Sequence record: PV029745.1
DNA: 64,000 nt
Strand: one strand, 5' to 3'
The position numbers and the translations under genes were made by a program. Of this stretch, positions 6,662 through 64,000 are shown piece after piece; the first letter of the stretch is position 1, and each line of letters opens with the position of its first letter. The notes beneath the pieces are model-generated. The model was not told where the DNA came from, ran no database searches, and saw only the letters and a program-made list of their open reading frames with translations.

Positions 6662-6710
6662 GTTAGTCACCTCTTTAAACGAACGGTATCCTTAGATACG
6701 GCTCAATTAG

Positions 6711-6718
6711 GTAATATA
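6711..6718 (-). promoter_or_regulatory. phiKZ-type early promoter TATATTAC
   Basis: Exact motif with an AT-rich upstream tract (aaaattttttt on the minus strand). Confidence 0.8.
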
Positions 6719-6740
6719 GATCTGAAAAAAATTTTATTGA

Positions 6741-6773
6741 CATAAAGCCCTCTCCCGAAGGAGAGGGCATATG
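6741..6773. terminator. Hairpin terminator, CATA..TATG family
   Basis: cataaagccctctcccgaaggagagggc is identical to the 1231 copy. Confidence 0.85.
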
Positions 6774-12437: not shown

Positions 12438-12703
12438 TGCCTGGTATAGCTGTTTGTAATATAGATTCTGCTGGTGGAACAATAAGACCAAGTGGTAATT
12501 CAACTGGCTTCTATAAAGGTAATCCAATTGCTGTATTAGGTGATCCCGTAGATGGTCATGGGCGATCCCCACATAACAGCGCAAACATGGTACAAGCTTC
12601 AACGAAAGCTTTTATTAAAGGCGTGCCAATTGTTCTGCAAGGAATGTCCGCTAGCTGTGGTCATACTGCAACCGGTAGACCCGATGCGACTAGTAGCGGT
12701 TGA
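12437..12703 (+). CDS. PAAR-like spike tip protein
   Basis: MPGIAVC...[17 protein letters not shown]...VFIKG-like [19 protein letters not shown] with Cys/His metal ligands. Confidence 0.9.
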
Positions 12704-12706
12704 CAA

Positions 12707-12740
12707 CATAAAGCCCCTACCGAATGGTAGGGGCGATATG
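12707..12740. terminator. Bidirectional hairpin terminator, CATA..TATG family
   Basis: cataaa-gcccctacc-gaat-ggtaggggc-gatatg between convergent genes. Confidence 0.85.
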
Positions 12741-12743
12741 CCG

Positions 12744-35807: not shown

Positions 35808-36587
35808 CTATGCCCGATGTTTCGAAACTTTATCTTCGAACAGCTTGTAGATCTCTGCAAGGGTACGTGGTACACCTTTATTGCTAAAGATCGACGGGTT
35901 TGCTTTAGCAGGTTTCGGGAATAGAACTTCACCGAGAGTTTTCTGATCTGCGGATAGGAATTTCTTAGCGCCGCCAGCACCAAGGAAATGTGCCAAATAC
36001 AAGTCTGTATCACTCGGTTCGCGATTGATTACTGGACGTAATACAGCTGCATTTCCTTTAAGGAATTCTGCACCCATTAATGCATTTGCACGTGGGTCTT
36101 TACGGAGTGCCCTAGTGGGATCTTTAGGTAGCCCGTATTTGGAACCATGTGCTTTGATCATGTCATCCCATGTAGCATCAAGGAACTGGAACCAACCAGT
36201 AGCCGAAGATGTAGATGCTTTGACAGTATAATCAAAAGCAGACTCAATGGAAGCGAATGTAGCGAGTAACCGAGGATCGGTACCAGTCATTGCTCCAACC
36301 GCATTCAGAGTGGGCATTGCAGCCGACCGAGATTTATTAGCTGTTGGGAAAGGGATAGCTTCCCATTTAGCAGGAACAGTAGCGGATTTGGCTAGTTCAG
36401 CTAGAGTAGCAGGTCCAACTTTTCCGTCAACCACCAAAGCTTTAGAAGCTTGGAAATCACGAACAGCTTTCTCTGTATCTCCACCGAAGATTCCGTCAGC
36501 GCTAACTGCGTATCCTGCGACTCGAAGTTTCATTTGTAGATCTTCCACAGCAGAGCCGCGGTCGCCACGTTTGAGTACAGTACCCAT
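35808..36587 (-). CDS. Modular endolysin: peptidoglycan-binding domain plus lytic transglycosylase (phiKZ gp144/KZ144-like)
   Basis: PGBD (LKRGDRG..V..LQ..L...DGIFG..TE.AV..FQ); catalytic FASIESAF; SSATGWFQF; LYLAHFLG. Confidence 0.95.
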   Translation of the reverse strand: MGTVLKRGDRGSAVEDLQMKLRVAGYAVSADGIFGGDTEKAVRDFQASKALVVDGKVGPATLAELAKSATVPAKWEAIPFPTANKSRSAAMPTLNAVGAMTGTDPRLLATFASIESAFDYTVKASTSSATGWFQFLDATWDDMIKAHGSKYGLPKDPTRALRKDPRANALMGAEFLKGNAAVLRPVINREPSDTDLYLAHFLGAGGAKKFLSADQKTLGEVLFPKPAKANPSIFSNKGVPRTLAEIYKLFEDKVSKHRA

Positions 36588-36604: not shown

Positions 36605-37138
36605 TTAATGTTCCAGCTCACGAATCAAGCCGTCTTCCATTAGACGATAACCACCATCCTCAAGTAGACGTGCATATTGGTTACCTTCAACCATTTCGAT
36701 CGTAACGATAGTCGAACCGAAGTAGGCGTAACTACCAGTCATTGCAACGAGTTCATATTCGAATACGTCGTCTTTGGTATTAATGACAGTGGTAGAGAAG
36801 GATAGATCGTCCGGACCGAATGTCATCTTACGGGAACGGTTGATCTCTTCTGCGATGGCCGCAGGTGTAGCTACACCAGATAGTTTAATAGACGGATTAG
36901 GTCCAAGACAATCAGGGTGAGACAATTCCAGACGACGATAAACGAACCAGTCTTTTAGACTAGCTTTGTTATCGATCATCTCGATATAAGTACGCCCCGG
37001 AACACCAGAAGTAGGACTGAAGAACATATCTTCGAAGTTTACAAACTCGTCCTGAATATTCTTGTGTTTAGACGTTTCCCGAATCAAACGGCAAAGTGCC
37101 GCACGAGACGGGAGGTTATAAGGAAAACGATCGCTCAT
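36605..37138 (-). CDS. Virion structural protein of the phiKZ adaptor family with a C-terminal RxLEDG triple motif
   Basis: FVYRRLEL adaptor motif; ends ARLLEDGGYRLMEDGLIRELEH. Confidence 0.7.
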   Translation of the reverse strand: MSDRFPYNLPSRAALCRLIRETSKHKNIQDEFVNFEDMFFSPTSGVPGRTYIEMIDNKASLKDWFVYRRLELSHPDCLGPNPSIKLSGVATPAAIAEEINRSRKMTFGPDDLSFSTTVINTKDDVFEYELVAMTGSYAYFGSTIVTIEMVEGNQYARLLEDGGYRLMEDGLIRELEH

Positions 37139-61779: not shown

Positions 61780-62817
61780 CTATCGCTTTCGGAATATCTT
61801 TTCGAGCAATGCATCTGCCTTGGCTACTTCAGCTAAGAAGTCCACGACAGTTCCAACTGATATATCCCTAAACAGGATGATATCTCTCACAGCCAAAGGT
61901 TCGAGTTCTTCGTCGTATAGATGTCGATGGAACATATCAAAACAATCCATACGTCTCTGAGCATCTTCCTTTGACATTCCTTTTGTACTTTCCTTTACAG
62001 CTTCTCTCCATTCACGTAAACTGGAATAGATGCCATACTTCTTAAAGTCTCCAGGTTTGATAACAATCGCTTTCGCATTATCCCGTCGCGCTGCAAATGT
62101 CACATTACCCCTTAGGTTAATATGAATACCAACAGGCATATCTGGCATGAAGACAGGCTTTACCTCAAGTAGATCGCTGCCGAATGGCATAAATACACTT
62201 TCGGTTATACGCTCATCGTCTACGAAATAAGCAACAGTTGTAGTAGTAGTCCAGATGATATCTTCCTGACGGTAGAGTTCATCGTTCTTCGAGAAGAAAC
62301 AATCGCGCGGGAAGAATGTAGTCTTCTTCGCTCGATCTGTGGAAACTACTTGAACGTTGAGCGCTTCGATCCAAAGCCCATAAGGATCGGTATCGATGTG
62401 GTCAAGGTCAACAATGAAATAGAAATCCAGTTCACATGGCGTGTTGGTTCCTTTGTTCTTAACAGAACCTACCAGTTGTTCCAGATATTCTTGAGTGAGA
62501 TTAGGCCAATGTTTAATCATCGCTCCGATATTAAGTTCTACATCGCCACCCCATGTAAAGTTGATACAAATAACAAGTCTATTTTCAATACGGTTAGTAC
62601 CCGGTAGATCCAGGACAATACCTGTTCCATCGATAATACTTATTTCATGCGTCGACTGGTTTAAGTAACGTACACGTTTATCGACGAGACCTTGACCGAA
62701 GAAAATGTTTTGGAAAACAGATGTCTGCCATCTGTCCATGTACGATGTGTCAAGAGGACACTCCAGTACGGGATCGTCCTCAATATGACCCGCACGGGAA
62801 CGGTTGATCTTTACCAT
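61780..62817 (-). CDS. Conserved hypothetical protein (345 aa)
   Basis: In an operon with the nvRNAP subunit; RBS atagga. Confidence 0.75.
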   Translation of the reverse strand: MVKINRSRAGHIEDDPVLECPLDTSYMDRWQTSVFQNIFFGQGLVDKRVRYLNQSTHEISIIDGTGIVLDLPGTNRIENRLVICINFTWGGDVELNIGAMIKHWPNLTQEYLEQLVGSVKNKGTNTPCELDFYFIVDLDHIDTDPYGLWIEALNVQVVSTDRAKKTTFFPRDCFFSKNDELYRQEDIIWTTTTTVAYFVDDERITESVFMPFGSDLLEVKPVFMPDMPVGIHINLRGNVTFAARRDNAKAIVIKPGDFKKYGIYSSLREWREAVKESTKGMSKEDAQRRMDCFDMFHRHLYDEELEPLAVRDIILFRDISVGTVVDFLAEVAKADALLEKIFRKR

Positions 62818-63259
62818 TTAAAACAATCCTATCCAATACCATTTCTACTTTACGTCCTTTGGGCCTACTCCGTTCTTGACTAGGTTCATATCGACTCGTT
62901 TGGGATGCTTTCGAATCTCTATGATTTCTGTCTCCACGTTTCCCATGCGCAACACGCGTTTTACCTTTACCCTTCCGCGTGTTGCGCGAACGTTGTTTTT
63001 CTTCAGGGGTACCTCCCGATTCATAACAACGGCCATTGGATATATTAACATGTCTTATTTGCTTCTCGAAGCGATTAGCAAAATGGGACATATTCTCATC
63101 CTGGGTAGGATGAATAGTAGTGGTGGTTTGAGAATTGGTTTGGTTAGACGTATTATTACTAACCGTAGTATTTTCTTTCATGACGACAATGTCGCCAGGA
63201 TTCATTTGGGAATCAGTGAGCTCTTGCTCAACATGATGCCCGTGTGTATTCCAGAACAT
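62780..63259 (-). CDS. Low-complexity early ORF (159 aa) overlapping the 68-aa ORF
   Basis: First ATG after the early promoter, with RBS agagga; Asn/Thr/Ser-rich then Arg/Lys-rich; the 3' half may be a shadow frame. Confidence 0.4.
   Translation of the reverse strand: MFWNTHGHHVEQELTDSQMNPGDIVVMKENTTVSNNTSNQTNSQTTTTIHPTQDENMSHFANRFEKQIRHVNISNGRCYESGGTPEEKQRSRNTRKGKGKTRVAHGKRGDRNHRDSKASQTSRYEPSQERSRPKGRKVEMVLDRIVLNGKDQPFPCGSY
62845..63051 (-). CDS. Small basic beta-rich protein (68 aa)
   Basis: Protein-like sequence that fits the operon spacing (ends 28 nt before the next start); nested in another ORF. Confidence 0.55.
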   Translation of the reverse strand: MLIYPMAVVMNREVPLKKNNVRATRGRVKVKRVLRMGNVETEIIEIRKHPKRVDMNLVKNGVGPKDVK

Positions 63260-63297
63260 TGTCTGATCCTCTAATTAGGGAATGATTCTTCAATACC

Positions 63298-63305
63298 GTA
63301 ATATA
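63298..63305 (-). promoter_or_regulatory. phiKZ-type early promoter TATATTAC
   Basis: Exact motif; upstream aaaaaatatttcaaatc on the minus strand; terminator 26 nt upstream. Confidence 0.8.
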
Positions 63306-63330
63306 GATTTGAAATATTTTTTAATGACGA

Positions 63331-63365
63331 CATAAAGCCTCTACCCGAAGGTAGAGGCTGTTATG
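63331..63365. terminator. Capsid operon terminator, CATA..TATG family
   Basis: cataaa-gcctctacc-cgaa-ggtagaggc-tgttatg; cUUCGg plus UUUAUG on the minus strand. Confidence 0.85.
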
Positions 63366-63391
63366 CCAGCAGTCAGCTTAACACTTCCGCT

Positions 63392-63478
63392 TTACCGCTC
63401 TAGGCGGCGGGCCACTCCGTCTTCAAGATAACGGGTAGTACCATTTTCAAGCTTACGGAAGGTACCCTTTCCAGTTCA
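63392..63478 (-). other. Putative in-frame readthrough extension of the major capsid protein (27 aa after UGA)
   Basis: TGA(63478-76) ACT GGA AAG ... CGG TAA(63394-92) encodes TGKGTFRKLENGTTRYLEDGVARRLER; no start codon of its own upstream of the motif. Confidence 0.55.
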
Positions 63479-64000
63479 ACCTTTTACGGCTTCAACCAGG
63501 GGCTTGTTCCACTGAGACTCACCCATCACTTCTTCGAAGCCAGTAACGTCGAATTCGAGAGCGAACGGGATGTTGTTAACGTGCAGGTTGAACGGAATCG
63601 CAGCGATTTCGCGAGTAACTTGCTGGCCACCACGGGTGATAGGCAGGTCGGCGATTACGGTCGATACGTAGTAGAATTGACCGAAGCTGAGGATGTCGTT
63701 CTCTTGCGGAGTCTTACGGGTCGGAATCACTACCAGCTTACCGTCGAACAGTTCGTTGTTGGTCGATACCAGGTCGTATTCCAGGTAAGCACCCAGGGTA
63801 CGATCGTCGCCCTTGGTCATCAGGTAGTTAGCGATCTCTTTGTCCGAGCAGAACAGGAACATCGGACGCTCGTCTTGGTTACCGGAGATCACGCGGAAAG
63901 CTGCTTCGATGTTGGATTCACGGTAAGCCGGGAACAGTACACCTTTAACAGCGTTCAGGATTGCCGAGCAGACGTCTTCCCAACGGTCTTGCGACTTCAG
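63476..64000 (-). CDS. Major capsid protein, C-terminal part (phiKZ gp120-like), truncated by the window
   Basis: Frame open from 64000 (LKSQDRWEDVC...) to the TGA; strongly optimised codons; synteny upstream of gp123-like; recalled resemblance to the gp120 C-terminus. Confidence 0.75.
   Translation of the reverse strand: MKSQDRWEDVCSAILNAVKGVLFPAYRESNIEAAFRVISGNQDERPMFLFCSDKEIANYLMTKGDDRTLGAYLEYDLVSTNNELFDGKLVVIPTRKTPQENDILSFGQFYYVSTVIADLPITRGGQQVTREIAAIPFNLHVNNIPFALEFDVTGFEEVMGESQWNKPLVEAVKG

Follow-up and report, generated by a model that had tools for sequence, protein, structure and literature searches.

The 64,000-nucleotide stretch of DNA analysed here, which we call the window, covers positions 124001..188000 of the 300,578-bp genome of Pseudomonas phage phiHQ (PV029745) and ends within the gene for the major capsid protein. 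The UGA stop codon of this gene is followed, in the same frame, by 27 codons that are conserved in relatives as a protein-coding sequence, and readthrough of the UGA, yielding a minor capsid isoform with a C-terminal extension, is probably how these codons are expressed; among the explanations that we weighed, it alone fits all of the comparative data. The window is 100% identical to PV029745 and 95-99.8% identical to the group of PS119XW, PA1C, and HPP-Temi, and phiHQ and this group are phiKZ-like, nucleus-forming jumbo phages. The end of the capsid gene is arranged as follows.

63479..64000, minus strand: 3' part of the major capsid protein gene (174 codons, 522 bases), which runs off the end of the window.
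63476..63478, minus strand: UGA with which the capsid gene ends, followed by A; proposed leaky (readthrough) stop.
63395..63475, minus strand: in-frame extension of 27 codons, with ~6 variable linker codons followed by three 8-residue repeats.
63392..63394, minus strand: UAA stop codon that closes the extension.

The capsid part in the window matches the major head protein family phrog_3231 over 174 residues (E 2.7e-67, profile positions 559-729 of 746). The full coding sequence lies at 187476..189701 of PV029745 and specifies 741 residues, and the domain PF25620 (PhiKZ_MCP) is found in relatives. The UGA-A stop and the motif-bearing extension of 27 residues are all present on the minus strand, as the original prediction described them from the DNA sequence. 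The repeats have a period of 8, with Arg at codons 7, 15, and 23 and an incomplete third repeat; the two full hexamers of the motif lie at 63457..63440 and 63433..63416. There is no Pfam match for the 27 residues, and hence no Ig-like (immunoglobulin-like) domain in them. Among the 66 non-overlapping open reading frames (ORFs) of the window, 46 (70%) end with TAA, 11 with TGA, and 9 with TAG, in agreement with the earlier remark that most genes here end with UAA. An open tail of at least 27 codons follows the stop of 33% of these ORFs, so that such a tail is not unusual by itself. The tandem motif, unlike the open tail, is unusual: it occurs exactly twice in the six frames of the 300,578-bp genome, where composition-matched simulations give an expectation of 0.03, and its conservation in relatives is far beyond chance. 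The extension is unannotated in all of the phage records examined.

For comparison, capsid 3' ends were gathered from annotated phage records, IMG/VR, metagenomes, and contigs that encode database relatives. In 26 distinct lineages, the capsid gene ends with TGA and the frame then stays open for 24-30 codons that encode the motif; these lineages include phiKZ, PhiPA3, 201phi2-1, Phabio, Psa21, Noxifer, and uncultivated relatives, with capsid identity down to ~60%. When the extensions of 23 of these lineages are aligned, Arg8, Glu11, Gly13, and Gly22 (numbered by alignment column) are invariant in all 23, and Arg17 and Glu20 are present in 22. Each conserved column is encoded by 2-5 synonymous codons, with Arg specified by both CGN and AGR, and all insertions and deletions in the alignment comprise whole codons. 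Frame 0 is open in 23/23 sequences, with stops in the +1 frame in 20/23 and in the +2 frame in 20/23. For 10 sequence pairs that together sample 20 different lineages, the pooled ratio of nonsynonymous to synonymous substitution rates (dN/dS) is 0.38 in the extension versus 0.15 in the last 150 capsid codons. On a shorter time scale, the four differences between the extensions of the window and HPP-Temi are all synonymous changes at third positions, and seven near-identical isolates have the extension in common. At the other end of the range, synonymous sites of the compared lineages differ by 35-80%, and the TGA and the intact frame persist. From this coding signature, the extension is judged to be translated and to be under purifying selection weaker than that on the core of the capsid protein. 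The suggestion of probable UGA readthrough thus withstands the alignment of relatives that was proposed as a check on it, with TGA kept and the downstream frame conserved alongside many synonymous changes in 26 lineages.

The type of stop codon tracks the presence of the extension. The stop before the extension is TGA in 26/26 of the lineages that carry it, and the TGA is followed by A in 19 of them, by G in 6, by C in 1, and by T in none. Among the 19 lineages that lack an extension, 18 end with TAA. The remaining one, a distant capsid relative (L156, 3223..3228), ends with TGA-T followed directly by TAG, a tandem stop that is the reverse of the leaky arrangement. In a neighbour-joining tree of the capsid C termini, lineages with no extension fall inside at least five extension-bearing groups, and each of them ends with TAA. 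This placement implies at least five separate losses of the extension, each paired with TAA. In two lineages (L036 and L138), eight in-frame codons after the capsid TAA resemble a decayed last repeat and may be the remnant of a lost extension.

The original prediction also held that the extension has no start codon of its own, and this is borne out across the relatives, where no in-frame ATG, GTG, or TTG lies between the stop and the first Arg of the motif in any of the 26 lineages. Furthermore, none of 120 capsid relatives with 55-100% identity, retrieved from a collection of 5.8 billion proteins, carries the tag, as we call the repeat-bearing peptide, as a plain fusion to the capsid protein, which means that no lineage among them has swapped the stop for a sense codon. 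This absence of natural fusions is in line with the product being tolerated in small amounts only. Taken together, the coding signature, the link to the stop codon, the lack of a start, and the lack of fusions argue that the tag must be translated, that the capsid frame is the only way to reach it, and that the stop and its weak type are both maintained by selection.

Some natural variants carry other modules behind the capsid stop. In one IMG/VR contig (IMGVR_UViG_3300043122_000192, referred to as L029, 1744..2358), the capsid TGA-A is followed by an in-frame ORF of 203 codons with a Big_2 Ig-like domain (Pfam E 4e-9); because an ATG lies three codons past the stop, readthrough and a separate start are both possible for this ORF. 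In a second contig of 220,598 bp (IMGVR_UViG_3300037502_002993, referred to as L100; 11297..11587, minus strand), the capsid homologue P0183 ends with TAA-C and is followed by 95 in-frame codons. There, a Big_2 domain (E 5e-7) begins at the first codon after the stop and the tandem tag forms the C terminus, with a TTG, at codon ten and inside the Big_2 domain, as the earliest start-type codon. The normal capsid tails of distant relatives are rich in Gly, Thr, Asp, Pro, and Glu, and in P0140, P0142, P0166, P0190, P0193, and P0197 the normal C terminus consists of 15-35 residues of low-complexity sequence rich in Gly, Thr, and Asp. Such tails suggest that the capsid protein's C terminus is exposed and tolerates additions. 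These arrangements indicate that the capsid C terminus can tolerate and probably display appended modules, and that the tag keeps company with surface-decoration domains. The metagenomic capsid homologues P0107, P0110, P0120, and P0121 are named 'virulence-associated protein VapD' at their source, a name that looks mis-annotated since the proteins match the phiKZ capsid family over their full length.

The second occurrence of the tandem motif in the genome is at the end of an ordinary gene.

36605..37138, minus strand: homologue of phiKZ gp143, 177 residues; matches phrog_2935 (E 7e-43), and relatives carry PF25613 (DUF7941).

This protein is 49.7% identical to PHIKZ143 and is encoded directly upstream of an endolysin homologue (35808..36587). 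Its tag comprises the last 22 residues (36673..36608), and the two hexamers that had been noticed at its end are found at 36670..36653 and 36646..36629. Within the gp143 family, three Arg residues at a spacing of 8 are invariant in 48/48 members. The gp143-type tag can be defined by three Arg residues 8 apart with Glu at +3 at the extreme C terminus, and codons 7, 15, and 23 of the capsid extension provide the same arrangement. The best PHROG match of the capsid extension is to the C-terminal 22 positions of phrog_2935, and is weak (E 0.053), the query being a short peptide. The original prediction described the protein at 36605..37138 as a virion protein. This description stands insofar as records label gp143 homologues as virion structural proteins and the 201phi2-1 homologue was found in virions by mass spectrometry, but gp143 has recently been proposed to be a holin-specific lysis regulator (PMC12894885). 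An AlphaFold2 model of the gp143 homologue has a mean predicted local distance difference test (pLDDT) score of 86.6, with 72-77 in the tag region, where short beta-bridges recur with a period of 8; the model fits a tag that folds as a small beta-hairpin meander. In a Foldseek comparison, the body of this model was similar to a chain of 150 residues from the outer baseplate of phiKZ (PDB 9xqd, E 1.6e-7, 14% identity), and the protein may be both baseplate-like and a lysis regulator.

The tag extends well beyond these two proteins. A degenerate DNA pattern for the tandem motif retrieved 87 stretches from IMG/VR, of which 80 were examined, and most of those beyond the capsid extensions and gp143 stand 5-8 residues before the stop codon of larger proteins from unrelated, smaller phages. 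Ten of these carriers were tested and belong mostly to tail-protein families (five to phrog_1101, two to Phage-tail_3), with one DUF7941 protein and three that match only families of no known function also among those tested. Relatives of phrog_1101 include PDB entries 8vjh_A and 8rk3_o. About 40 of the IMG/VR loci encode lambda J-like tail-tip proteins or other tail proteins that end in the motif (e.g. L059 915..3218, L080 8360..10714, and L113 7422..10049), and longer homologues of such proteins continue past it, as illustrated by the phrog_1101 profile length of 1405. Judged by this distribution, the tag is apparently a portable C-terminal module of phage structural proteins. The motif, originally called virion-type, is not special to phiKZ-like virions and ends the tail-tip proteins of many unrelated phages. 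We found no Pfam family and no paper that describes the tag, with literature matches to the motif strings being unrelated, and it seems to be undescribed as a family. PDB sequence searches with the C termini of gp143 and of a tail protein gave chance-level matches or none.

Downstream of the extension, the following features separate the capsid gene from the next gene.

63330..63359, minus strand: intrinsic-terminator-like hairpin and U-rich run, with the hairpin at 63359..63336 (10-bp stem, 4-base loop).
63298..63305, minus strand: 8-base string between the terminator and the next gene, kept in most relatives.
62780..63259, minus strand: downstream gene of 159 residues, in the position of phiKZ gene 121 and outside the extension.

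The hairpin was recognised by folding (-34 kcal/mol, z = -5.5) and was missed by a simple terminator scan, and a hairpin with the same U-rich tail is found at the equivalent place in nearly all relatives. The extension is upstream of this terminator, as had been proposed, and is thus within the transcript. The 8-base string has a match at the corresponding position in phiKZ, PhiPA3, Phabio, Psa21, and several metagenomic relatives and is presumed to be a promoter element of the downstream gene. Terminator and string belong to a cassette (63290..63367, minus strand) that recurs at least 20 times in the phage genome, with other copies at, for example, 6703..6766 and 12701..12742 of the window and at L146 5648..5714; the extension is not part of the repeat. 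The recurrent cassette, and not the extension, explains the 'second place' that BLAST reports in close relatives. The HPP-Temi record lists a hypothetical protein of 47 residues that spans the capsid stop in the +1 frame (L004 1979..2122). Its call is probably spurious, because stops interrupt the +1 frame both in the window and in other relatives. The near-identical records PV029745 (phiHQ) and PP968062 (HPP-Temi) are assigned to different genera, Phikzvirus and Pawinskivirus, respectively, and the capsid DNA of the window is only ~74% identical to that of phiKZ.

Several explanations other than readthrough can be proposed for the conserved codons. From a single genome, the usual reading would be that they are dead, left behind by a nonsense mutation, a sequencing error, or the decay of a former C terminus, and the eight codons behind TAA in L036 and L138 could be the remains of a last repeat that has decayed in this way. 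The original prediction had itself named a recent TGG-to-TGA change or a sequencing error as its alternative. Conservation refutes this explanation, to which we assign virtually no probability: the TGA and the open frame have outlasted the divergence of synonymous sites described above, the near-identical isolates share the extension, and there is no sense codon at the stop position in the DNA lineages or in the 120 capsid proteins. The region could also be conserved as a non-translated element, such as a signal for mRNA 3' stability or termination or a site in the DNA, with an open frame that is incidental. The proximity of the recurrent terminator-promoter cassette speaks for such an element, as does the window's own RNA fold around the stop, which is mildly better than that of shuffled sequences (z -1.9). 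However, the cassette stops short of the extension, the fold is accompanied by neither conserved structure nor compensatory changes, and the invariant residues vary at third codon positions while lengths change by whole codons and stops interrupt the other frames. The same amino acid motif is also found on true protein C termini, and a non-translated element is highly improbable.

Two further explanations accept that the 27 codons are translated. Non-canonical initiation, or re-initiation once ribosomes have terminated at the UGA, could yield a free micropeptide that is never joined to the capsid protein. The coding signature, which proves translation of the frame and not fusion, is equally in keeping with this idea, and many lineages have a purine-rich stretch behind the stop that might, in principle, retain ribosomes. 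Nevertheless, the purine-rich stretch is not kept in Psa21-like and Noxifer-like lineages, no lineage offers an in-frame start before the first Arg of the motif, and in L100 a start further along would cut the Big_2 domain, which begins at the first codon past the stop. A free peptide would also leave unexplained why the stop has to be TGA and why it changes to TAA when the tag is lost, and we regard it as unlikely. Alternatively, UGA could be decoded by a dedicated system. Selenocysteine insertion, a suppressor transfer RNA (tRNA) of the phage, and a changed genetic code all have UGA as their codon, and selenocysteine machinery is present in Pseudomonas hosts. The lack of a conserved hairpin 3' of the UGA and of a match in Rfam argues that there is no selenocysteine-type element. 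The genome encodes eight tRNAs (two for Leu and one each for Pro, Met, Asn, Tyr, Thr, and Asp), and neither the window nor the remainder of the genome yielded a suppressor tRNA, with no UCA or CCA anticodon and no tRNA for Trp. Moreover, TGA serves as an ordinary stop for 11/66 ORFs in the window, with tails that are short and unconserved. Dedicated decoding is consequently very unlikely, and with no RNA element, no suppressor tRNA, and normal use of TGA elsewhere, what remains is leaky termination with near-cognate decoding by the host.

We infer that UGA readthrough accounts for the extension in the following way. Selection would keep the capsid UGA leaky, so that most ribosomes stop there and produce the normal capsid protein of 741 residues. 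A minority of ribosomes would decode the UGA with a host near-cognate tRNA, add the 27 codons, and end at the UAA before the terminator. For UGA, the near-cognate tRNA is most probably tRNA-Trp. The product would be a minor capsid isoform with a C-terminal tag composed of a short variable linker and three 8-residue repeats, each of which would start with an invariant Arg, continue with Glu three residues on, and then make a Gly turn. Readthrough rates at leaky stops are typically in the percent range. The phiKZ head has T=27 symmetry and 1620 subunits (PMC11297242). If the proposal is true, the two figures together would give tens of extended capsid subunits per head.

The tag shared with the gp143 homologue and with tail-tip and baseplate-type proteins of many unrelated phages suggests that it would act as a portable, exposed C-terminal binding module, for which a role in docking or adhesion is plausible; the original prediction had suggested that fibres or decoration proteins might dock on it. 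In phiKZ, the C-terminal arm of the capsid protein contributes to a six-helix bundle at the centre of the hexamer and lies on the outer face of the pentons, where it touches the outer protein gp244 (PMC11297242), a position that is compatible with an exposed tail. With the arm in this position, a few capsomers of each head would have a protruding tag.

A number of observations weigh against readthrough or limit it. The module in L100, with its Big_2 domain and tag, is in frame behind a TAA and does not fit a simple rule that UGA is required. No conserved RNA structure was detected after the stop (RNAalifold, 23 sequences, -2.2 kcal/mol, no compensatory pair) and a search of Rfam at a permissive threshold returned chance-level matches only, so that readthrough would have to depend on the weak context of the stop codon alone. 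Constraint on the extension is only moderate, at the dN/dS of 0.38 given above. The tags of the capsid protein and gp143 do not co-vary in nine genomes (mean score 52.0 within genomes versus 53.0 between genomes, permutation p 0.66), so that neither gene conversion nor pairwise co-evolution is supported. Together with a relative that has lost the capsid tag and keeps the gp143 tag (L038 and L114, on one contig), this result indicates that the two tags are not a dependent pair. The 3.5 Å model of the phiKZ capsid stops at the annotated last residue, and the text of its description, as searched, makes no mention of extra density (PMC11297242). An isoform that accounts for a few percent of the subunits would be lost in averaging. 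Finally, the extended protein is unreported in the searchable literature, where we found no direct evidence for it, and literature searches on readthrough in phiKZ or Chimalliviridae and on ribosome profiling of phiKZ returned nothing relevant.

In a more speculative proposal, which we consider unlikely, the tag serves as an address label common to two proteins. The rare extended capsid subunits and the lysis regulator gp143 would then bind one common partner, thereby coupling head assembly to the timing of lysis and bringing gp143 into the virion, and the leaky capsid stop would serve as a platform on which modules are swapped (tag, Ig-like domain, or Ig-like domain plus tag).

Readthrough at the capsid stop would matter because phiKZ, PhiPA3, and 201phi2-1 are model nucleus-forming jumbo phages, with virions that have been studied by mass spectrometry and near-atomic electron cryomicroscopy. 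If it occurs, each head of these phages would carry a handful of capsid subunits with an exposed tag that is absent from current models. In addition, a double-stranded DNA phage would then provide a clear case of readthrough that is maintained by selection, with consequences for gene calling and for the interpretation of proteomes of large phages. That the lysis regulator gp143 and tail-tip proteins of unrelated phages bear the same tag suggests that tailed phages share a binding module, as yet uncharacterised.

Extension of a capsid protein by recoding is already known from Q-beta, T7, and Listeria phages, and we did not find readthrough described in these phiKZ-like phages. In Q-beta (Leviviridae), low-frequency readthrough of the leaky UGA of the coat gene yields the A1 protein, an extended coat protein present in a few copies in the capsid. 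The arrangement proposed here resembles A1 in that the coat gene would end with a leaky UGA and give rise to a C-terminally extended coat protein. Q-beta, a small RNA phage, adds a long domain that is folded and is needed for infection, whereas the extension in the 300-kb double-stranded DNA jumbo phage comprises 24-30 residues and is known from sequence. Recoding also gives a minor, longer protein in the 10A/10B pair of T7 and, by +1 frameshifting, in the capsid and tail proteins of Listeria phages A118 and PSA. These cases resemble the present proposal in that recoding takes place at the 3' end of the capsid gene of a double-stranded DNA phage and produces a minor, longer capsid protein. They rely on frameshifts, while the extension here is in frame 0 behind a stop codon, so that only readthrough fits.

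Fraser and colleagues reportedly described Ig-like domains that are added to phage structural proteins by programmed frameshifts. The likeness is in the addition of optional surface modules by recoding, and Big_2 domains are found behind the capsid stop in L029 and L100; the extension in the window differs in having neither an Ig-like domain nor a Pfam match, and in its route, which would be readthrough and not a frameshift. The gp143 family has the same C-terminal tag of three repeats, but as the ordinary end of an ORF on a folded body of 150 residues, where the capsid tag stands behind a stop codon. The lambda J-like tail-tip proteins (phrog_1101) of unrelated siphophages share the tandem motif 5-8 residues before their stop codons, and they carry it with no recoding.

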